9,051 bases of DNA from Octopus sinensis (Eukaryota). Below the pieces are notes generated by a model. That model ran no database searches. It was given only the letters and a program-made list of their open reading frames with translations, and had not been told where the DNA came from. Below, piece after piece: positions 1 through 9,051 of the stretch. Each line of letters starts with the position of its first letter. The first letter of the stretch is position 1. The DNA lies in assembly GCF_006345805.1 (NCBI RefSeq), contig NW_021828026.1, forward strand, positions 1-9,051. The letters run 5' to 3'. The position numbers and the translations under genes are program-made.

Positions 1-4
1 CACA

Positions 5-208
5 CACGCCGGGCGAAATGCGTAGCCGTATTTCGTCTGCCGTTACGTTTTCTGAGTTCAAATTCCGCCGAGGTCGACTTTGCCTTTCATCCTTTCGGGG
101 TCGATTAAATAAGTACCAGTTACGCACTGGGTCGATATAATCGACTTAATCCGTTTGTCTGTTCTTGTTTATCCCCTCTATGTTTAGCCCCTAGTGGGTA
201 GTAAAGAA

Positions 209-210
<2 letters not shown>
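5..210 (+). mobile_element. tRNA-derived SINE, family A, tail type 1; first ~25 nt of the head missing
   Basis: B-box-like GAGTTCAAATTCC at 54-66; central block GCCTTTCATCCTTTCGGGGTCGAT..AAGTACCAG; tail ending GTGGGTAGTAAAGAAAT. Colinear with the reverse complement of 2121-2354, 3106-3519 and 8169-8397. The central block resembles the Meta/MESC-type SINE domain (from memory, unverified). Confidence 0.92.
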
Positions 211-211
<1 letters not shown>

Positions 212-290
<79 letters not shown>

Positions 291-311
291 ATAAATACAT
301 ATATGATATAT
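212..311. repeat. (TA)n microsatellite
   Basis: Pure TA run 212-275, degenerate to ~311, directly after the SINE tail. Confidence 0.99.
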
Positions 312-337
312 GTAAAACCACACAGACATATATAGTC

Positions 338-370
338 AGAGAGGGAAAGACAGAAAGAGAGAAAGAGAGG

Positions 371-403
<33 letters not shown>
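338..403. repeat. (GA)n microsatellite
   Basis: Imperfect AG/GA run. Confidence 0.97.
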
Positions 404-631
404 TCGTAAACTTCTTTTAACTCCTCTTAAAATTTTTCAAAACGATAATTGTATTTTTGTGTATAATTAGTTAACCGCATTGTATAATTCAGAAATATTG
501 CCGCTTCTACGTTTCTAGGACTTCATATATTGCTTCTCCAGTCTATACAACCGCAGTATTTTTTCCATTAGTGACATTTCGTACGTTCTTTTCTAAATGA
601 GATATTATACATGTGTGTGCGAGATATAGAG

Positions 632-775
632 AATACCAAACGAGATCCCTATGGATACCGTATTTATTACAACGAGTGGCTGGTAAACGTATCTAACTCG
701 CTTTCGCTCGTCAGATACGTTTACAAGCCACGAGTTGTAATAAATACGGTATCCATAGGGAATGAGTTTGGTATT
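632..775. repeat. Long imperfect inverted repeat: 66-bp arms, 12-nt centre
   Basis: 632-697 is the reverse complement of 710-775 at 58/66 positions. The centre TCGCTTTCGCTC (698-709) can fold further: g700-c707, c701-g706. Confidence 0.98.
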
Positions 776-872
776 TTATTTATTACACACGAATAAACGA
801 CCTTATTTTATTAACCCAATAACTAAATTCTTCACATTTAGTTGTAACTTATGAATGACAAAAGTAGTGCCA

Positions 873-1027
873 TCACCGTGACCTCGGGTCATCACCATGA
901 ATTGACCAATCAGAAGCAGCGCTGTCACCGTGACCTCGGGTCATCACCATGGATTGACCAATCAGAAGCAGCGCTGTCACCGTGACCTCGGGTCATCACC
1001 ATGGATTGACCAATCAGAAGCAGCGCT
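873..1027. repeat. 52-bp minisatellite, 3 copies
   Basis: Unit TCACCGTGACCTCGGGTCATCACCATGGATTGACCAATCAGAAGCAGCGCTG starts at 873, 925 and 977. One substitution (a900 vs g952); the last copy is 1 nt short. Confidence 0.99.
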
Positions 1028-1142
1028 CGCAGTATCTGACATATGTTAGATACCAAAAATATCTCAAAGTGTTCTCAGTCACATGTGTGTAATAATGTCT
1101 TAAGTTATTCGTATACCTCATCCAGGGCACTATTATTTTCAT

Positions 1143-1199
1143 GGCAGTGCCCCAGCATGGCCACAGTCTAATGACTGAAATAAATAAAAGATAAAAGAA
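1143..1199 (+). mobile_element. Isolated CR1-type 3' tail of a SINE or LINE
   Basis: GTGCCCCAGCATGGCC (1147-1162) is identical to the LINE 3' UTR at 5362-5377 and is followed by an A-rich (AAAAGAT)-like tail. Confidence 0.78.
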
Positions 1200-1241
1200 T
1201 ATAATTTTACGCTCTCGCTAGGAAAATTTCCATTTGCCGCT

Positions 1242-1312
1242 ACGGTTAGGGTTATGGTTAAGTTTTATGTTTAGTGTTTACGGTTTGCGGTTATGGCTTA
1301 CGGTTTACGATT
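1242..1312. repeat. Degenerate 6-mer array resembling (TTAGGG)n
   Basis: Units ACGGTT, AGGGTT, ATGGTT, AAGTTT etc.; only one perfect TTAGGG (1246-1251). Confidence 0.6.
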
Positions 1313-1698
1313 CTGAAGCACTCCGTCGATTACGACGACGAGGGTTCTGGTTGATCCGAATCAACGGAACAGCCTGCTCGTGAAATTAACGTGTAAGTGG
1401 CTGAGCACTCCACAGACACGTGTACCCTTAACGTAGTTCTCGGGGATATTCAGCGTGACACAGAGAGTGACAAGGCCGGCCCTTTGAAATACAGGTACAA
1501 CAGAAACAGGAAGTAAGAGTGAGAGAAAGTTGTGGTGAAAGAGTACAGCAGGGATCACCACCATCCCCTGCCTGAGCCTCGTGGAGCTTTAGGTGTTTTC
1601 GCTCAATAAACACTCACAACGCTCGGTCTGGGAATCGAAACCGCGATCTTATGACCGCGAGTCCGCTGCCCTAACCACTGGGCCATTGCGCCTCCACA
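1313..1698 (-). mobile_element. Full-length tRNA-derived SINE, family C (386 bp), with 13-bp TSD
   Basis: A-box TGGCCCAGTGG (1685-1675); B-box GTTTCGATTCC (1641-1631); exact direct repeats ACGGTTTACGATT at 1300-1312 and 1699-1711. The head looks tRNA-Arg-like, as in the octopus OR-type SINEs (recollection). Confidence 0.92.
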
Positions 1699-1854
1699 AC
1701 GGTTTACGATTATAGCTATTCGGAAAGGAGAAATACTCGTTAAATTTCATCATATGAACTTTTTAAGTTTCTTTCATACGGTCGTAATTGCCAATACCTA
1801 ACTGAAATTTCTAAATGACGCGTTAAGTGATAAGGTATATTGTGCAATGCATAT

Positions 1855-2020
1855 ATTTTCATCATTTAATTGTTTCAGTCATTGGAAAGTTTTGTCGATC
1901 AAATAGACTTAACAGGTACTAAGGTCGATCCGTCCGACTTAAATTCATCACAGCGGTAATCCAGCATGGCCGCTATCTAACAAGTGAAAGAATTAAAAGA
2001 TTAAAGCTAAAAGATGAAAG
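1855..2020. mobile_element. Two degenerate CR1-tailed SINE 3' ends in divergent (fold-back) orientation
   Basis: Minus arm TTTCAGTCATT (1873-1883) is the reverse complement of AATGACTGAAA (1170-1180). The plus arm has CAGCGGT (1951-1957) and CCAGCATGGCCGC (1961-1973), both also in the LINE 3' UTR. Confidence 0.58.
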
Positions 2021-2120
2021 CTATGCCACAGAATCTTGCAAAACTAGACACCAATCGGGACAGCAATATCTAAGCGTTATCTATGCTTAAGGTTATCTAT
2101 GAAGAAAAATAGCCAATATC

Positions 2121-2354
2121 TATTTCTTTACTACCCACAAGGGGCTAAACACAGAGAGGACAAACAAGGACAGACAAACGGATTAAGCCGATTTTATCGA
2201 CCCCAGTGCGTAACTGGTACTTATTTAATCGACCCCGAAAGGATGAAAGCCAAAGTCGACCTCGGCGGAATTTGAACTCAGAACATAGCGGCAGACGAAA
2301 TACCTCTAAGCATTTCGCCCGGCGGGCTAACGATTCTGCCAAGCTCGCCGCCCT
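2121..2354 (-). mobile_element. Full-length family A SINE, tail type 1, with 16-bp TSD
   Basis: Reverse complement starts GGCGGCGAGC. Flanks AAAAATAGCCAATATC (2105-2120) and AAAAACAACCAATATC (2355-2370) are 14/16 identical. Confidence 0.95.
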
Positions 2355-2628
2355 AAAAACAACCAATATCAATGTATGTGTTCTCTAAAAACCATGAATC
2401 CACATATACTTTTCACTTTACTTGACTGAAGGACAAATCAGAATAGCGACACTAAGATATGAAATTTACAAACAAGCACAACAAATGTGTATTCCCATCA
2501 TCGGCTGCCAAACGGATAACATTGTGCTTTTGACACCTCTTCTGTCCCATCCCATCCAGCAATGTGAACAGTGTTGAAAACATAAACGCTGCCTGAGAAT
2601 CAATAGTAATCAGTAAGGCTGAAACATT

Positions 2629-2672
2629 ACACACAGACACACACACACACACATACACACGTACACATACAT
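2629..2672. repeat. (CA)n microsatellite
   Basis: Imperfect CA run. Confidence 0.95.
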
Positions 2673-2700
2673 GCATATTTATAGATATTTATAGACATAT

Positions 2701-2907
2701 ATCCCTTCATTTATAGGCACCAGTCTTGAAATTTTAGGTTCTGGTACTAGTTAAAGACAGTAACCCCAGTGCTTGAGTGGTTCTATATTTTATTCGACCT
2801 GAAAGGATGACAGACAGAGATAACCTCAGCAGAATTTGAACTAAAAGCCAAAAGAAAGAATGTTGCTAAGCATTTTGTCTGGTGTGCAACGATTGTACCA
2901 GCTCACC
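2701..2907 (-). mobile_element. Old, degenerate family A SINE, tail type 2
   Basis: Recognisable blocks ACCCCAGTGC, GAAAGGATGA, AGAATTTGAACT, GCTAAGCATTT, CCAGCTCACC. The reverse complement of the tail contains GTGCCTATA, as at 8662-8670. Confidence 0.68.
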
Positions 2908-3105
2908 TATATATATATTTCAGGTCACTCCTTACTGCTGCTCGTTGCATATAACGCAGTATAACCTGTCACATGGTCGGGTTGTCAACAACTAAACGGA
3001 AAAACGTACGAATAAAAAAGCAAGACCCGTTAAAGAGCAGAGGAAAGACTGTGTGTCAACGGCCATCCGAATGAAGTGTGCTGTTCATCAGTCTCGTGAC
3101 ATACC

Positions 3106-3519
3106 TATTTCTTTATTACCCACAAGGGGCTAAACACAGAGGGAACAAACAAGGACAGACATAGGTATTAAGTCGATTACATCGACCCCAGTTCGTAACT
3201 GGTACTTAATTTATCGACCCCGAAAGGATGAAAGGCAAAGTCGACCTCGGCGGAATTTGAACTCACAACGTAACGCAGACGAAATACCTATTTCTTTATT
3301 ACCCACAAGGGGCTAAACATAGAGGGGACAAACAAGGACAGACATAGGTATTGAGTCGATTACATCGACCTCAGTGCGTAACTGGTACTTAATTTATCGA
3401 CCCCGAAAGGATGAAAGGCAAAGTCGACCTCGGCGGAATTTGAACTCACAACGTAATGATAGACGAAGTACGGCTACGCATTTCGCCCGGCGTGCTAACG
3501 TTTCTGCCAGCTCGCCGCC
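3106..3519 (-). mobile_element. Family A SINE dimer (one full plus one 5'-truncated copy) inside a single 14-bp TSD
   Basis: Partial unit 3106-3288 and full unit 3289-3519; exact direct repeats CTCGTGACATACCT at 3093-3106 and 3519-3532. Confidence 0.95.
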
Positions 3520-3734
3520 TCGTGACATACCTGCATCGACTATTGTTATCAACAGTGACAAAGTGTGAAAGGACACATACAAATCATTATATTTCTACAG
3601 AAATAAATGTGTGGGCTGTCCAAGAAATTTGCTTACTCCGATTTTTATCAAGCTCATCTTGAAAAGGAAAATAAAAGGGGAGAAAAAGTAAAGTTCTTTG
3701 ACCCTCGTCGAATAGATGAGGGTCCATCAAAAAT

Positions 3735-4056
3735 ACATAATACATACATGCATACAGATAGGTCGATAGATAGATAGATAGATAAATAGATTGATAGCTA
3801 GATAGATAAAGGGGTAGATAGACAAATAGAAAGATATGTATACATATATACACACATACATACATACATATAAGTATGTACTTTATATATATATATATAC
3901 ATATATAGATAGATAAATGCATACATACATACACACACATACATACATACATACATACATACATACATACATACATACATACGTACGTACATACATACAT
4001 ACATACATACATACATACGTACATACATACATACATACATACATACATACATGCAC
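3735..4056. repeat. Compound (TAGA)n/(TA)n/(TACA)n microsatellite
   Basis: TAGA-rich ~3753-3830; near-pure TACA ~3921-4051. Confidence 0.98.
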
Positions 4057-4165
4057 ATATGGGTTTGTGTATATATAACGATATCTGTTTATGGGCATTT
4101 GTACGCTTGTGTTTGTATCAAGGGGAGAAAAAGAACAAGCTTAGGTTCTTCGCGAATCGGTTTGC

Positions 4166-4264
4166 CACAAGGCTTTGGTCTGCCCGAGGCTATAGTAGAA
4201 GACACATGCCCAAGGTGCCACACAGTGCGACTGAACCCGGAACCATGTGGTTGGTAAGCAAGCT
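4166..4264 (-). mobile_element. CORE-type SINE fragment (partial tRNA head plus CORE-like block)
   Basis: B-box-like GGGTTCAGTCGC (4238-4227), then GCACCTTGGGCATGTGTCTTCTACTATAGCC (4218-4188), which shares ACCTTGGGCA with the MIR CORE domain. A-box and tail are absent. Confidence 0.72.
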
Positions 4265-4267
4265 AGT

Positions 4268-4296
4268 TGTGTATAGACACACACATATATATACAT

Positions 4297-4338
<42 letters not shown>

Positions 4339-4350
4339 GTTGTGTGTGTA

Positions 4351-4382
<32 letters not shown>

Positions 4383-4409
4383 TATGCACGCATATAAATA
4401 TGTGCTTAC

Positions 4410-4500
<91 letters not shown>

Positions 4501-4534
4501 TGCACGCATATAAATATGTGCTTATATATATATA
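4268..4534. repeat. Compound (TA)n(TG)n microsatellite with a duplicated ~116-bp higher-order unit
   Basis: The unique 28-mer TGTATGCACGCATATAAATATGTGCTTA occurs at 4381-4408 and 4497-4524. Confidence 0.97.
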
Positions 4535-4743
4535 ACGGGAAGCTTAATGAAAATAAACAAAAGACGAAGGCAGGTGGAGTAAAAACAAACAATTGTATTA
4601 GTATGGCGCTCAGGAATATAAATAAAACAAGTCTTTTACGTTTCGAGCCTACGCTCTTCAACAGAAAGATGCACAGAAAAGAAACACGGAGAGAAACAAG
4701 GAGAGAAAAAAAATGCGTGCAGAAGCTAGCGATTCAACATGGC
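4535..4743 (-). mobile_element. Penelope-like element fragment (pseudo-LTR-like), flanked by (TA)n
   Basis: Non-microsatellite block bounded by TA runs on both sides, carrying a minimal hammerhead motif of the kind found in Penelope-like pLTRs. No RT or GIY-YIG sequence is present, so the class call rests on the motif. Confidence 0.55.
4632..4669 (-). ncRNA. Minimal type-I hammerhead ribozyme motif with variant core
   Basis: Minus strand: UCUUU-CUGUUGA-A-GAGC(GUAG)GCUC-GAAAC-GUA-AAAGA. Stem I 5 bp, stem II 4 bp closed by G-C, palindromic ACGU stem III, GUA cleavage triplet. Position 6 is U instead of A. Confidence 0.65.
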
Positions 4744-4762
4744 ATATATATATATATATATA

Positions 4763-5342
4763 AGAGAGAAGGAGACACTGATGGTCCTATGGAAAACATT
4801 TGTCCTCAGCCGCTTGGTCTACTGCTCCCAACTTTGGTCACCACACAATATAAAACAAACAGCAGAACTCGAAGCAACTCAGAGAAGCTACACAAAGAAA
4901 ATCGTCTCAATGCAAAATGTCAGCTACTGGGAAAGACTGAAGGTATTAAACCTCTTCTCCCTGGAGCGGAGGCGGGAGAGATATGCAGTGATATACATCT
5001 GGAAATCCTGGAGGTCTTGTCCCAACTTTGACATTCAAAGTTACTCCAACCGCAGAAGGGGCGCCGCTGCGTGGTGCCAAGGATTCCAACATCACCATCA
5101 AAATACAGGTCCAGATACTGCAACAGCTGGGTTTCAGAGGACCACAGCTCTTTAACATCCTCCCTAAATGCCTGAGAGGCTTACATGGTGTGGATGTGGG
5201 TTTCTTTAAAACTAAACTGGATCTCTTCTTGTTGGGAGTCCCAGATGAACCTACCTCACGACAGGAGACTCGGATGCGGGCAGCAGCATCGAACTCCCTT
5301 GTTGATCAAGTGCCACGTATCAGAGGTGGATTCACAAACTAG
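4763..5342 (+). pseudogene. Frameshifted C-terminal part of LINE ORF2 (post-RT region), CR1 clade
   Basis: REKETLMVLWKTFVLSRLVYCSQLWSP..SYWERLKVLNLFSLERRRERYAVIYIWK, then after frame repair ILEGLVPNF..RRCVVPRIP..YCNSLGFRGPQLFNILPKCLR..FKTKLDLFL..RAAASNSLVDQ..TAG (5340-5342). The YCSQLWSP, RLKxLxLFSLERRR and FKxxLDxFL motifs are typical of CR1-group ORF2 ends. Confidence 0.9.
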
Positions 5343-5418
5343 TGTAGCTCATTCAGCGGTGGTGCCCCAGCATGGCCGCGGCCTTCGGGCTAAAACATTT
5401 TTAAGGATTTAAGGATTT
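4763..5418 (+). mobile_element. 5'-truncated CR1-clade LINE (ORF2 C-terminus, 3' UTR and short-repeat tail)
   Basis: ORF2 remnant, a ~55-nt 3' UTR, and tail TTTAAGGATTTAAGGATTT (5400-5418); (TA)n on both sides. Confidence 0.9.
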
Positions 5419-5490
5419 ATATATATATATACATATATTTATTTGTGCGTGTGTATGTGTATGTATATATATATATATGCATGTGTATAT
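5419..5490. repeat. (TA)n/(TG)n microsatellite
   Basis: Seen directly. Confidence 0.93.
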
Positions 5491-5829
5491 CACTATTTTA
5501 TCACCAACACACAATCATAAGAGTGCGTCTGTGTGTGCGAGTCGTTTTTACGCATGACTATACGCAAATGATTCGCTGGATCTATAATTACAAAAGGGTT
5601 ACGTAAAGTGAGTATGATGACGGTGGTTTAGAATCTCGTATACGATTTTAGCGGGAAATATAGCTACGACAGCGATAAGATGCATCATTGAATTATGACG
5701 TCAGCACGGAATATCTACGACAATCTCCAGTAACGCGACGACGACACGAAGAGTAAGCAGCTGCAATGACTGCAGCAAAGCAGGAACAACGCAAAATTTT
5801 ACGCTTTGTTTCTCTCTCACTTTCTCTGT

Positions 5830-6290
5830 CTCTCTCTCTCCCCTCTCTTTCTCCCTCCCTCTATCAACCTAGCTACTTTGTTTTCGCTCTCTCTCTCTCT
5901 CTCTCTCTCTCTCCCCTCTCTTTCTCCCTCCCTCTATCAACCTAGCTACTTTGTTTTCGCTCTCTCTCTCTCTCTCTCCCCTCTCTTTCTCCCTCCCTCT
6001 ATCAACCTAGCTACTTTGTTTTCGCTCTCTCTCTCTCTCTCCCCTCTCTTTCTCCCTCCCTCTATCAACCTAGCTACTTTGTTTTCCTCTCTCTCTCTCT
6101 CTCTCTCCTCCCCTCTCTTTCTCCTCCCTCTATCACACATAGCTACTTTGTTTTCGCTCTCTCTCTCTCTCTCTCTCCCTCTCTCTCTCCCTCCCTCTAT
6201 CAACCTAGCTACTTTGTTTTCACTCTCTCTCTCTCTCTCTCTCTTTCTCTTTCTCTGCCTGTCTCTGTCTCTCTCTCTGTCTCTTTCTCT
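5830..6290. repeat. 63-73-bp minisatellite with embedded variable (CT)n, 6 copies
   Basis: Anchor CTATCAACCTAGCTACTTTGTTTTC starts at 5861, 5934, 5999, 6062, 6130 (variant) and 6197. Confidence 0.97.
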
Positions 6291-6629
6291 CTTTCTATGT
6301 ATATATAGATGTGTGTGTGTATGTGTGTACACACAGACACACACATGCACACACTTGCACACACTTGCATAAAACGTGTAAATACACGAAACAAGCAGGG
6401 AAGAGTGAACGAGGGAGACTGCAACATGACCACTTGACCTTCTAGAAATAGCAACCGAATCACCCTCGATTTCACATCGTTCAGTTTTCTATAACGAATA
6501 GACTTATCAGACGTTGCCGTCCTACAGACTTTTAGAAGGTGGAAGTGGCCATGGATGGAACGCCTTTGCTGATAGTTCTGTTTCATCAAGAATGACCGGG
6601 AGATAGAAGGAACCAAAGAACTCTGCATT

Positions 6630-6860
6630 TTATTATTATTATTATTATTATTTCTTCTTCTTCTTCTTCTTCTTCTTCTTCTTCTTCTTCTTCTTCTTCT
6701 TCTTCTTCTTCTTCTTCTTCTTTTTCTTCTTTTTCTTCTTTTTCTTTTTCTTCTTTTTCTTCTTATTCTTCTTCTTTTTCCTTCTTATTCTGTTTTCTTT
6801 CGCTTATTATTTATTATTTATATATTATTATTATTATCATTATTATTTATTATTATTATT

Positions 6861-6892
<32 letters not shown>

Positions 6893-6893
6893 T
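6630..6893. repeat. Compound (TTA)n/(TTC)n/(TCA)n trinucleotide microsatellite
   Basis: Includes a pure (TTC)23 at 6652-6720. Confidence 0.98.
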
Positions 6894-6896
6894 ATG

Positions 6897-6971
6897 CAGG
6901 TCACTACCTGGATCCAACTGGGAATCCTGGGGTTAGTGGCCCGCGCTCTTAACCACTACGCCATATGCCCG
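6897..6971 (-). mobile_element. tRNA-derived SINE head, family D, running into a trinucleotide tract
   Basis: A-box TGGCGTAGTGG; degenerate B-box AGTTGGATCC; no acceptor-stem pairing; near-identical to 7413-7488. Confidence 0.8.
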
Positions 6972-7022
6972 TATCATAATCATGCGTTGTCGTTGTCATC
7001 ATTATCATCTCATTATCATCAT

Positions 7023-7224
7023 TGGCACAACTGTTTCCGCGTCGGACTAGATGTCTTGAGGCGATTGTTCCATCATTACATTCTGAATTCAAATTTCGCC
7101 GAGGTCGACTCTGCATTTCATCCTTTCGGGTTTCAATGAAAACCGTACTAGCTGAGCACTGGGGTCGATGTAATAGACTTACTCACCTCCCCACAAATTG
7201 CTGGCCTCGTACCAAAATTTGAAA
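7023..7224 (+). mobile_element. Degenerate family A SINE, tail type 2
   Basis: GAATTCAAATTTCGCCGAGGTCGACTCTGCATTTCATCCTTTCGGG..GCACTGGGGTCGATGTAATAGAC aligns to family A; after the core the tail differs from type 1. Confidence 0.8.
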
Positions 7225-7311
7225 GACGGCATGCACAGCTCTCTCACTCAATAATACAAATAATCCTAATTATTATTAGTATTCTTGAGTGAGAGAGCAG
7301 TGCATGCCGTC
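7225..7311. repeat. Inverted repeat, 33-bp arms, 21-nt spacer
   Basis: 7225-7257 vs 7279-7311: 31/33 complementary (mismatches 7237/7299 and 7252/7284). Confidence 0.97.
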
Positions 7312-7327
7312 AAAGTGACACTGGGGG

Positions 7328-7337
7328 ATTATTATTA

Positions 7338-7412
<75 letters not shown>
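7328..7412. repeat. (TTA)n microsatellite
   Basis: Near-pure TTA run at the 3' side of the family D head. Confidence 0.99.
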
Positions 7413-7416
<4 letters not shown>

Positions 7417-7488
7417 TCACTGCCTGGAATCGAACTGGGAATCTTGAGGTTAGTAGCCCGCGCTCTTAACCACTACGCCATATGCCCG
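7413..7488 (-). mobile_element. tRNA-derived SINE head, family D, with (AAT)n tract
   Basis: CGGGCATATGGCGTAGTGGTTAAGAGCGCGGGCTACTAACCTCAAGATTCCCAGTTCGATTCCAGGCAGTGACCTG: clear A-box and B-box GTTCGATTCC. Confidence 0.85.
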
Positions 7489-7891
7489 TATCATAATCAT
7501 CGTTGATTATGGTACGAAGCCCAATATACCCATCATGACCACTCGCTGATGAGGGTACACCAGGCACATGCAACATAACATTATATGCGCGATATGGTGA
7601 TTTTTGATCAAGATAAACAGCGCATGACATTGCAGGTGGGGCCCCGTTAAAATTGTCTTCAGGTCGAGTAGCTAACCCTGCTGAAAAGGTTCTTGAAGAA
7701 GAGTTGTTAAAGGATGACGAATGAAACACCCATGTTTCCCAGAAGTGAATTATCCAAACCCCCCAAAATACCCCTCAACACATGGCCATCATGTTCCCTC
7801 ACTGGTGATCAGAGATGCACATATCGTCAGCCACCAAGGGAGATGCTCAACTGGTGAGAGTCAAACAACTGACAAGATAATCTGTGGTATT

Positions 7892-8140
7892 TGAACTCGC
7901 GATCGTGAGGACGTGGTTTCAATTCCTAGACCGGATGGTGCATTGTGTTCTTGAGCAAGACACTTCATCTCACGTTACTCTGCGATCACTGCGACACCTG
8001 ACGCGTGGCACACCGTGCACCTGTTCAGGCAACGTCGATTATTTGATGGAGGAGTATGCTAATGTACGACACACATATTCGATCTCTTTAAACAAACCAT
8101 TTGTGCAGGTCGTTCAACAAAAACCGAATACTCATATTCT
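7892..8140 (+). mobile_element. 5'-truncated CORE-like SINE whose head is related to family C; 3' boundary uncertain
   Basis: GAACTCGCGATCGTGAGGACGTGGTTTCAATTCCTAGACCG aligns with the family C head GGACTCGCGGTCATAAGATCGCGGTTTCGATTCCCAGACCG; CORE-like TGTGTTCTTGAGCAAGACACTT at 7944-7965. Confidence 0.62.
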
Positions 8141-8168
8141 AGGCGCAATCCTACTGTCAGTCATGACC

Positions 8169-8397
8169 TATTTCTTTATTACCCACAAGGGGCTAAACAT
8201 AGAGGAGACAAACAAGGACAGACATAGGTATTAAGTCGATTACATCGACCCCAGTGCGTAACTGGTACTTAATTTATCGACCCCGAAAGGATGAAAGGCA
8301 AAGTCGACCTCAGCGGAATTTGAACTCACAACGTTGCGCCAGACGAAATACCGCTAAGCAATCCGCCCGGCGTGCTCACGTTTTTGCCAGCTCGCCG
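8169..8397 (-). mobile_element. Near full-length family A SINE, tail type 1
   Basis: High identity to 3289-3519; shares the CATAGGTATT and CACAACG subfamily variants. Confidence 0.95.
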
Positions 8398-8463
8398 AAG
8401 GGAGTCTCATGTTGTTGTTGTTATTGTTCTCATCGTCGTTGTTGTTGTTGCTATTGTTATTAA

Positions 8464-8688
8464 GGCGGCGAGCTGGCAGAATCACTAGCGCGTCTGAAGA
8501 AATGCTTAGGGGGTGTTTCGTCTGTCGCTACGTTCTGAGTTCAAATGCCGCTGAGGTCAACTTTACATTTCATCTTTCGGGCTCGACAAATTATTAAGTA
8601 CCAGTTGCGTACTGGAGTCGATGAGGTCGATTGTTCCTCTCCCCAGAAACATCCACACCATGTGCCTATAGTAGAAATGATTATCATT
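8464..8688 (+). mobile_element. Full-length family A SINE, tail type 2
   Basis: Starts GGCGGCGAGCTGGCAGAATC; B-box GAGTTCAAATGCC (8537-8549); ends GTGCCTATAGTAGAAATGATTATCATT. Confidence 0.88.
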
Positions 8689-8699
8689 AGTATTTTTGT

Positions 8700-8884
8700 T
8701 GTGGTGCGGGCAAGTGGATTATAGCAGTTATTATCATTATAATCATCATCAGTATCCTCCTCTTCCTCCTCCTCGTCATCATCCTTATCATTAGCAATTG
8801 CAGCAGCAGCAGCAGCAGTAATAGTAGTAGTAGTAACAGCAGTAGTAGCAATAGTAGTAGTAGCTGTAGCAACAGCAGCAGCAA

Positions 8885-8959
<75 letters not shown>

Positions 8960-9051
8960 CATTGATTATATTAATATTATGTTGATTATTAGAGTTGTAG
9001 TGATGATGGTACTGATAATGATGATGAGGACGAAGTTGTTGTTGATGATGA
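8700..9051. repeat. Compound trinucleotide microsatellite (ATC, CCT, GCA, GTA, GAT, GTT)
   Basis: Seen directly; GCA/GTA block ~8799-8957. Confidence 0.97.

Follow-up and report, generated by a model that had tools for sequence, protein, structure and literature searches.

A long terminal hairpin with conserved G·A mismatches in a short dispersed mobile element from Octopus sinensis

Results

A long imperfect hairpin with clustered mismatches

We analyzed 9,051 nucleotides of DNA from Octopus sinensis (positions 1 to 9,051 of the forward strand of contig NW_021828026.1, RefSeq assembly GCF_006345805.1); we refer to this whole stretch as the window. Positions ~625–1095 of the window are one copy of a short, non-coding, dispersed mobile element, and the terminal stem-loop of this element is a long imperfect hairpin at 632–775. 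An earlier reading of the window, made from the letters alone (the sequence-only reading), had singled out this hairpin because its departures from symmetry, mostly tandem G·A steps, looked non-random. As described below, the G·A mismatches are conserved features of a family of such hairpins, not random private mutations.

The hairpin is symmetric around the axis i + j = 1407. The left arm (632–701) and the right arm (706–775) have 70 positions each, of which 60 form Watson-Crick pairs; the “66-bp” stem of the sequence-only reading was an approximation. The stem continues outward, with imperfect pairing, into the terminus of the element, (T)ATAGAG at 625–631, which is where the homology to all of the other copies begins. 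The four loop bases (702–705) are TTTC on the + strand and GAAA on the - strand; on the latter, closure by GC/GC gives GCGAAAGC.

Two of the mismatched sites lie in the stem and are seen on the + strand. At site 1, CGAG (641–644) stands opposite TGAG (763–766; this is CGAG after a C>T change), and the tandem G·A/A·G mismatch extends to a run of four non-Watson-Crick positions: 642 G·A 765, 643 A·G 764, 644 G·T 763, and 645 A·A 762. Site 2 is a full CGAG/CGAG block (673–676 opposite 731–734), with mismatches 674 G·A 733 and 675 A·G 732. The other mismatches on the + strand are 682 G·A 725, 695 A·C 712, 698 T·C 709, and 699 C·T 708. All of the G·A positions listed in the sequence-only reading are present, but it overlooked 644 G·T 763 and 645 A·A 762. 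Also, comparison to related copies (see below) showed that the single G·A that it listed at 682/725 is specific to the window copy or its lineage, as are A·A 645/762, G·T 644/763 (the C>T change at 763), and A·C 695/712. The third site is at the apex, where the - strand reads CTGAC-GA-GC-GAAA-GC-GA-GTTAG, just as had been reported. In this copy, then, no one strand has all of these features: the + strand has the outer two G·A steps, and the - strand has the third step together with the GAAA cap.

The mismatches are not randomly placed. They form five adjacent steps (P = 0.002 versus random placement), and 7 of the 10 are of the G·A/C·T class, as compared to 17–33% expected under point mutation (P = 0.02 to 0.0003). 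All six of the CGAG- or CTCG-type tetramers in the window hairpin are located at tandem mismatch sites. When we folded both strands with DNA parameters, which was one of the checks proposed in the sequence-only reading, each strand formed a single long hairpin, with energies of -57.2 kcal/mol (+ strand) and -57.8 kcal/mol (- strand). These correspond to z = -16.3 and -17.0, and 0 of 200 shuffles folded as well.

Related hairpins in another assembly

BLAST within the window identified no second full copy of the hairpin, and relatives were found by way of a spurious open reading frame (ORF) of 61 amino acids (611–796) that spans the whole hairpin. An exact look-up and a word-indexed protein search with this ORF gave no match. 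An exhaustive search of representative proteins found two, P0012 and P0013, which are translations of related hairpins. A profile built from the window ORF, P0012, and P0013 then retrieved 40 ORFs, all from a single assembly in the European Nucleotide Archive (ENA), ERZ25071447, on contigs of up to 1.8 Mb. The word-indexed search had missed P0012 despite a 12-residue identical stretch, and a profile query of the same database returned it, so negative results from word-indexed searches should not be trusted for very short ORFs. The N-terminal parts of ~39 of the related ORFs are all different up to IENTT and are followed by a common core, (D)IENTTRVPVGDDLSYNEWFLKRI. This implies that each ORF runs out of a flank of its own and enters a dispersed repeat by way of the left arm. 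In two of the ORFs (P0038 and P0049), the left arm (…DDLSY) jumps into the poly-C/poly-A tract that follows the hairpin, which suggests that these loci lost most of the hairpin by deletion between TCTTACA repeats.

We retrieved the DNA of 13 of these loci (L001 to L013, ~250 kb). BLAST and pattern extraction yielded 16 hairpin copies; L008 has four copies, and L011, L012, and L013 are near-identical duplicates of one insertion, flanks included. We compared 13 independent copies to the window. With ~40 relatives tagged by ORFs and DNA for 13 of the independent copies, the hairpin is not a single-copy sequence, an outcome that would have refuted the sequence-only reading. Besides the hairpin and one microsatellite stretch, the window has nothing in common with the 13 loci, and this includes its short interspersed nuclear elements (SINEs). 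Hence, the genome behind the window and the genome behind ERZ25071447 are not close relatives. We also scanned metagenome, bacterial-genome, and viral collections for exact patterns from the hairpin and found 0 matches; since a control with the window's multi-copy SINE gave 0 matches as well, the negative results in these three collections are uninformative.

The hairpin is the end of a short mobile element

Across copies, the element, of 470–690 nt, is surrounded by unrelated flanks. Homology stops sharply on both sides, at flank|ATAGAGAATAC at the hairpin end and, 460–730 nt away, at GGTGTGTAAGAAA|flank at the other end, and the left flanks of the 13 copies are unrelated up to ATAGAG. The ends of the element are thus TTTCTTACAC... 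and ...CTCTAT. Every complete copy has 12-nt inverted repeats, TTTCTTACACAC and GTGTGTAAGAAA, and homology ends directly after GTGTGTAAGAAA. In the window, an inverted-repeat search found the repeat beside the hairpin at 780–790 of the + strand (TTATTACACAC, which is TTTCTTACACAC in ERZ25071447). The repeat at the far end of the element was found by the same search and by alignment, at 1085–1095 of the + strand (GTGTGTAATAA, which is GTGTGTAAGAAA in the relatives). In all 13 copies, the hairpin lies outside of the inverted repeats, between one repeat and the sharp end of homology. We found no target-site duplication in the flanks of the 10 complete copies, and a scan for duplications of at least 4 nt flanking the window hairpin gave only ACGAGT direct repeats, which are internal. 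At the insertion junction, the element begins with TTT, and the base beside the repeat end is A or T.

The body of the element in the window includes three units of a 52-bp tandem repeat (859–1027). This array is an amplified internal segment of the element: it is homologous to a segment that is single-copy in L001 and L002, which shows that the hairpin and the array belong to one element. The array contains a CCAAT-like sequence (GACCAATCAG) and a small palindrome (TGACC-TCG-GGTCA). Homopolymer tracts of variable length adjoin the inverted repeat. Near the repeat end, at 1032–1053 of the + strand, lies a second palindrome of 22 nt (GTATCTGAC ATAT GTTAGATAC), and L001 and L002 have a palindrome at the corresponding position that aligns with it. 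The arms of the second palindrome match the tip stem of the large hairpin exactly, and the asymmetric pair of that stem recurs in them in reversed orientation. These matches suggest that the element displays one and the same small hairpin at either end.

L008 carries its four copies within ~7 kb (5037–12273), and two of these are arranged tail-to-tail with their repeat ends only TATA apart. Within one hairpin copy at L004 (10270–10945), a 27-nt unit of the right arm, from one CGAG to the next (CGAGTTAGATACGTTTTAGAAACCG), has been amplified about 25 times, which amounts to a minisatellite derived from the hairpin arm.

The G·A blocks and the cap are conserved, and the apex can be inverted

We aligned the 14 hairpins (the window and the 13 other copies) in the orientation of the window's + strand. 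Copies of the majority type (L007, L009, and L008b) have CGAG at all six tetramers as well as a CGAAAG loop, all on one strand. In the family consensus, the six CGAG tetramers face each other pairwise and form three blocks of C-G / G·A / A·G / G-C under the GCGAAAGC cap. Apart from the blocks, this purine strand has just a G·T, a T·G, and a bulged A as imperfections; read on its complement, the imperfections of the consensus turn into C·T and A·C. In most copies, the purine strand is predicted to be 2–5 kcal/mol more stable than its complement, using a model that gives no bonus for G·A pairs.

The window copy departs from this consensus at its tip. Its apex block at 697–710, which reads CTCGCTTTCGCTCG on the + strand, matches the consensus, CGAGCGAAAGCGAG, at 14/14 positions when it is reverse-complemented. 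The inversion covers at least 695–712, where the asymmetric pair is oriented opposite to its counterpart in the second palindrome (1032–1053), and undoing the inversion places all three G·A steps, the cap, and the G·T wobble on the + strand. In other words, the G·A features are split between the strands of the window copy because its apex is inverted. The consensus has the sequence of a CGAG block at three sites and that of the mini-hairpin at its cap, and so does the window, with the apex inverted; the sheared pairing itself is predicted. An inversion of just the apex can also be read in the protein P0035 (...LTRFRSLD... instead of the usual ...LTSESELD...). In L002, nearly the whole hairpin is inverted: L001 matches the reverse complement of L002 with 93% identity, as compared to only 77% for L002 read directly. 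Overall, ~85% of the copies have the hairpin in one orientation. At L011 (10115–10249), and also at L012 and L013, a single CGAG is all that remains of the apex CGAG-CGAAAG-CGAG, owing to a deletion between direct repeats.

The sequence-only reading had proposed to test whether the G·A steps are retained across copies while the stem pairs covary, and this is what we observed; its other refuting condition, that the steps are private mutations, is thus contradicted as well. Outside of the CGAG and loop columns, the window is 72% identical to the consensus (82/114); within these columns, if we allow for the inversion of the apex, 29 of 30 bases are identical (binomial P ~ 7e-4). Across 63 pairs, 97.4% are paired, and 15 pairs changed on both sides while pairing was kept. 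In contrast, column shuffles gave 2.2 +/- 1.3 such pairs, and sliding the partners gave 0–1. RNAalifold independently arrived at this fold as well and placed internal loops precisely where the GA dinucleotides lie.

Individual sites do change. Among the 13 other copies, site 1 is CGAG/CGAG in seven and CGAG/CAAG in two; in the other four, one arm has been converted to CTCG or CTTG, so that this GA>TC change in one arm makes the site perfectly paired. The left arm was changed in L001, L005, and L008c, and the right arm was changed in L002. Site 2 is GA/GA in 11 copies, inverted (TC/TC) in L002, and Watson-Crick in L005, again through a GA>TC change in one arm. The G·A step at the apex is paired in none of the copies. 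The proteins give a similar picture: among the 39 ORFs that enter from the terminus, the left codon of site 1 encodes Arg (CGA) in 33 and Leu (CTN) in 4, and the left codon of site 2 encodes Glu in 35 of 39, with Ser (TCG) in P0012 only. Recurrent doublet changes that restore complementarity are as expected if one arm serves as the template for the other, which suggests that the arms of the hairpin do pair in vivo. Mechanical homogenization alone would erase the blocks, yet the blocks were kept in both lineages, so their retention probably reflects selection in active elements.

Other features of the window

The rest of the window is rich in repeats. A SINE of ~230 nt (…TCGGCGGAATTTGAACTC…) is present at 50–216 (- strand), 2116–2349, 3103–3334, 3286–3517, and 8166–8397, and these copies are 78–99% alike; partial copies lie at 2763–2859, 7022–7130, and 8512–8577. 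Neither the metagenome nor the prokaryotic-genome collections contained a match to this SINE, and none of the 13 related loci carries it. The minus strand at 1560–1700 resembles a tRNA (…GGTCTGGGAATCGAAACCGCGATC…) and is probably the head of another SINE. At 4739–5342 is a frameshifted C-terminal fragment of the reverse transcriptase of a long interspersed nuclear element (LINE) (…LVYCSQLWSPH…LSLERRR…), whose best relatives are short contigs from ENA or Logan, at 44–70% identity, and one crab protein. A CT-rich tandem repeat with about six units of 63–73 bp (…CCCTCTATCAACCTAGCTACTTTGTTTTCGCT…) occupies 5821–6240. There are also microsatellites of (TA)n at 212–311, (AG)n at 338–403, (ATAC)n at 3920–4060, (CTT)n/(ATT)n at 6630–6900 and 7328–7410, and (CAG/TAG)n at 8790–8960.

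Discussion

The likely class of the element

Helitron-like elements (HLEs) move by rolling-circle transposition via single-stranded DNA, using an HUH nuclease that is fused to a helicase. Judging from its layout, the element that carries the hairpin is probably a non-autonomous group-2 HLE (Helentron/Helitron2, HINE) that uses the folding of the hairpin as an end signal. HINEs have subterminal inverted repeats, a 3' palindrome, central tandem repeats, and no target-site duplication (PMC4067079; PMC7492417). Our element shares a set of features with group-2 HLEs such as DINE-1 of Drosophila and Cg_HINE of the Pacific oyster. Those elements have inverted repeats of 11–16 nt at both ends, as does ours, with a terminal stem-loop beyond one repeat and a small palindrome beside the other. 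Other shared features are the lack of a target-site duplication, the A/T-rich junction, the central segment that amplifies into tandem repeats, and the non-coding, dispersed copies.

There are also differences. The palindromes that have been described for Helentrons have stems of 5–10 bp (PMC4067079), versus ~70 positions per arm in our hairpin, whose stem-loop of ~145 nt is roughly 10 times longer. Furthermore, our hairpin reaches the last bases of the element, has three conserved tandem G·A blocks and a mini-hairpin cap, and occurs in inverted forms. Terminal hairpins of HLEs are already known. What appears to be new are the large size, the conserved G·A blocks, the cap, and the inverted forms: in a full-text search of the literature, we found no description of a 145-nt terminal hairpin in a Helitron-like element, of conserved tandem G·A blocks or a mini-hairpin cap in one, or of inverted forms.

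Canonical Helitrons (HLE1) also have a hairpin at one end of a rolling-circle transposon, and it is thought to signal the end of the element. They begin with 5' TC and end with 3' CTRR, with a palindrome of 16–20 nt about 11 bp from the end, and they insert between A and T (PMC4067079). Our element does not belong with them, because its ends (TTTCTTACAC... and ...CTCTAT) lack CTRR, because it has inverted repeats, and because its hairpin is far longer.

A number of other systems use similar building blocks or logic. Hairpins with CGAG blocks in the AUTS2 promoter and the GCGAAAGC or GCGAAGC mini-hairpins at single-stranded phage origins, where they mark the starts of replication and transcription, are made of the same parts as our hairpin, but those motifs are short (8–60 nt), whereas here the blocks are spaced along a 145-nt stem at the end of a eukaryotic transposon. 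The sequence-only reading had compared the hairpin to integron attC sites, which are bacterial sites for a tyrosine recombinase, have extrahelical bases and R/L boxes, and conserve their structure more than their sequence. Like attC, our hairpin is an imperfect palindrome whose folded single strand may be the substrate and whose unpaired features mark a strand. However, the window is a repeat-rich eukaryotic context (with SINEs and a LINE fragment) and no integron context, and the hairpin has G·A blocks instead, so the comparison holds as an analogy and not as membership. HUH nucleases read imperfect DNA hairpins at the ends of parvoviruses, IS200/IS605, and IS91-type elements, and the ends of parvoviruses, which exist in two inverted forms, retain bubbles of mismatched bases. 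Our element differs from these in that it has a hairpin at one end only, no genes, and one dominant orientation, and we do not propose that it belongs to any of these groups.

How the hairpin might function

Both building blocks have been described in the structural literature. CGAG blocks, which combine G:C pairs with sheared G:A pairs, form thermally stable DNA hairpins (PMC10085684). The melting temperature of GCGAAAGC is 76.5 C, as compared to 33 C for GCTTTTGC; it is also resistant to nucleases, and in single-stranded phage DNA it is located where priming and transcription start (PMC13037366). Standard nearest-neighbor parameters fail for mini-hairpin motifs (PMC13037366), so our argument about stability rests on this literature and we did not use computed energies as evidence either way.

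We propose that the purine (G·A) strand would fold once the element is unwound by an HUH nuclease-helicase, with the very stable GCGAAAGC cap nucleating the folding. The folded hairpin would then mark the end of the element for the transposase, as either a recognition signal or a termination signal. The G·A blocks would cost the single-stranded hairpin little, but they would interrupt the duplex palindrome about every 30 bp, leaving perfect runs of at most 28 bp, and they may themselves be recognition features. The conservation of the G·A mismatches suggests that the folded single strand is what the element's enzyme reads. The sequence-only reading had held that the folded strand or cruciform, rather than the duplex sequence, is what has been maintained, perhaps as a substrate for a recombinase or nuclease. 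The related copies and the covariation support the former, and a role as a substrate would fit with the location at a transposon end.

Some observations weigh against a group-2 HLE whose enzyme reads the folded hairpin. We found no Rep-helicase or autonomous partner, and no Helitron domain among the called genes of the 13 loci, to which this search was limited. Group-2 HLEs insert between T and T, and in the flank at the hairpin end of our element, the second base is T in 12 of 13 copies but the first base is variable. As mentioned above, the stem is far longer than those described for Helentrons. If the stem-loop is the 3' end, then the G·A strand is the bottom strand, and the model needs either the “HLE2-reverse” arrangement, in which a 5' stem-loop has also been described, or the folding of the non-transferred strand. 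Of the 15 compensated pairs, 13 stem from a single split (the window versus the rest), and the other copies are ~93% alike, so that they have their blocks in common by descent. Finally, nearest-neighbor DNA energies do not favor GA/GA over other double mismatches (rank 36–62 of 144).

Alternative explanations

Could the palindrome be maintained by copying from arm to arm (gene conversion or template switching), with the CGAG tetramers acting as same-direction protein-binding sites in duplex DNA and the G·A mismatches arising as a by-product of their mirror placement? We consider this unlikely. The GA>TC conversions in one arm do show that the arms template each other, our data can also be described as ACGAGT direct repeats at mirror positions, and CGAG repeats have acted as points of slippage (in the apex deletion of L011 to L013 and in the 27-bp array of L004). 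However, the motifs have exactly the context of stable sheared G·A blocks, and the cap is the most stable known DNA mini-hairpin. Also, all of the other imperfections on the purine strand are G·T or a bulge, and such a strand bias is not expected for a duplex site. The existence of copies with an inverted apex implies that a fixed orientation in the duplex is not strictly kept. It is very unlikely that the hairpin instead acts as RNA, such as a hairpin-RNA or microRNA-like precursor, a substrate for RNA editing, or a structured motif. Tandem G·A pairs beside a GNRA loop are a classic RNA motif, CGAG tandem G·A pairs and the cGAAAg loop are stable in RNA too, and there were weak matches to models of long microRNA precursors. 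But Rfam gave 0 matches at the gathering score, and the best permissive matches were generic matches to long hairpins and scored far below threshold (28 versus 200 bits and 26.8 versus 84 bits). Animal microRNA precursors have much shorter stems and much larger loops than our hairpin. A role in DNA is also indicated by where the hairpin lies, right at the terminus of a mobile element that has inverted repeats and lacks poly-A. We also considered a hammerhead-like reading of the - strand apex (CUGANGA...GA) and rejected it, as it lacks a third helix and has GAGU in place of the required GAAA, and Rfam had no match.

Two other kinds of mobile DNA seem highly improbable to us, and to a similar degree. 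One is an ordinary cut-and-paste miniature inverted-repeat or foldback element, whose long terminal inverted repeats would simply be the hairpin. In favor of this, the copies are dispersed, short, and non-coding, one end is palindromic over almost its whole length, and the TA at 634–635 and at 772–773 could be a target duplication. Yet the element continues for ~320–550 nt past the hairpin, on one side only, and the absence of a target-site duplication, together with the location of the hairpin outside of the 12-nt inverted repeats that bracket the body, identifies it as something other than a cut-and-paste miniature element. The other is a rolling-hairpin (parvovirus-like) replicon, whose hairpin telomere would exist in two inverted forms. 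The inversion of L002 relative to L001, the apex-only inversions in the window and in P0035, and the retention of mismatched sites are all reminiscent of this. But there is a hairpin at one end only, the elements are just 470–690 nt long and without genes, and the copies are not divided between the two orientations at ~50% each; the rare flips are explained by inversion between the arms of any palindrome. We also considered whether the G·A pattern reflects chance private mutations in a single-copy inverted duplication that was made locally. The window has no other copy and the three public DNA collections had no matches, but those collections also lack the window's multi-copy SINE, and the related copies with the same sites refute this explanation, to which we assign a negligible probability. 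Similarly, we dropped the idea of a nested insertion with duplication of CGAG, as the family consensus shows that the blocks are fixed and evenly conserved.

For a group-2 HLE with a folded end signal, a more ambitious version is conceivable. The CGAG/CGAG blocks and the GCGAAAGC cap might be a structural code that is read on one folded strand by a Helitron-like Rep-helicase, with the inverted forms arising from a step of the transposition cycle that resembles hairpin transfer and not from passive recombination. We think that this is quite unlikely to be correct, but if true, it would link rolling-circle transposons mechanistically to hairpin-telomere replicons.

Significance

To our knowledge, the recognition of ends by Helitron-like transposases is poorly understood, and the terminal hairpin is usually described as just “a short palindrome.” A large hairpin with conserved non-Watson-Crick pairs and covarying stems would show which strand is built to fold, and the CGAG blocks and the mini-hairpin cap are specific and testable features for recognition. 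The family also documents by-products of such a structure: the inversion of a transposon's hairpin, templated “correction” of mismatches in dead copies, and the birth of minisatellites from the arms and from the body of the element. These observations are relevant to the study of both rolling-circle transposons and non-B DNA, and the pattern of conservation would reveal, directly from sequence, that the structure of single-stranded DNA has been under selection in a eukaryotic genome.

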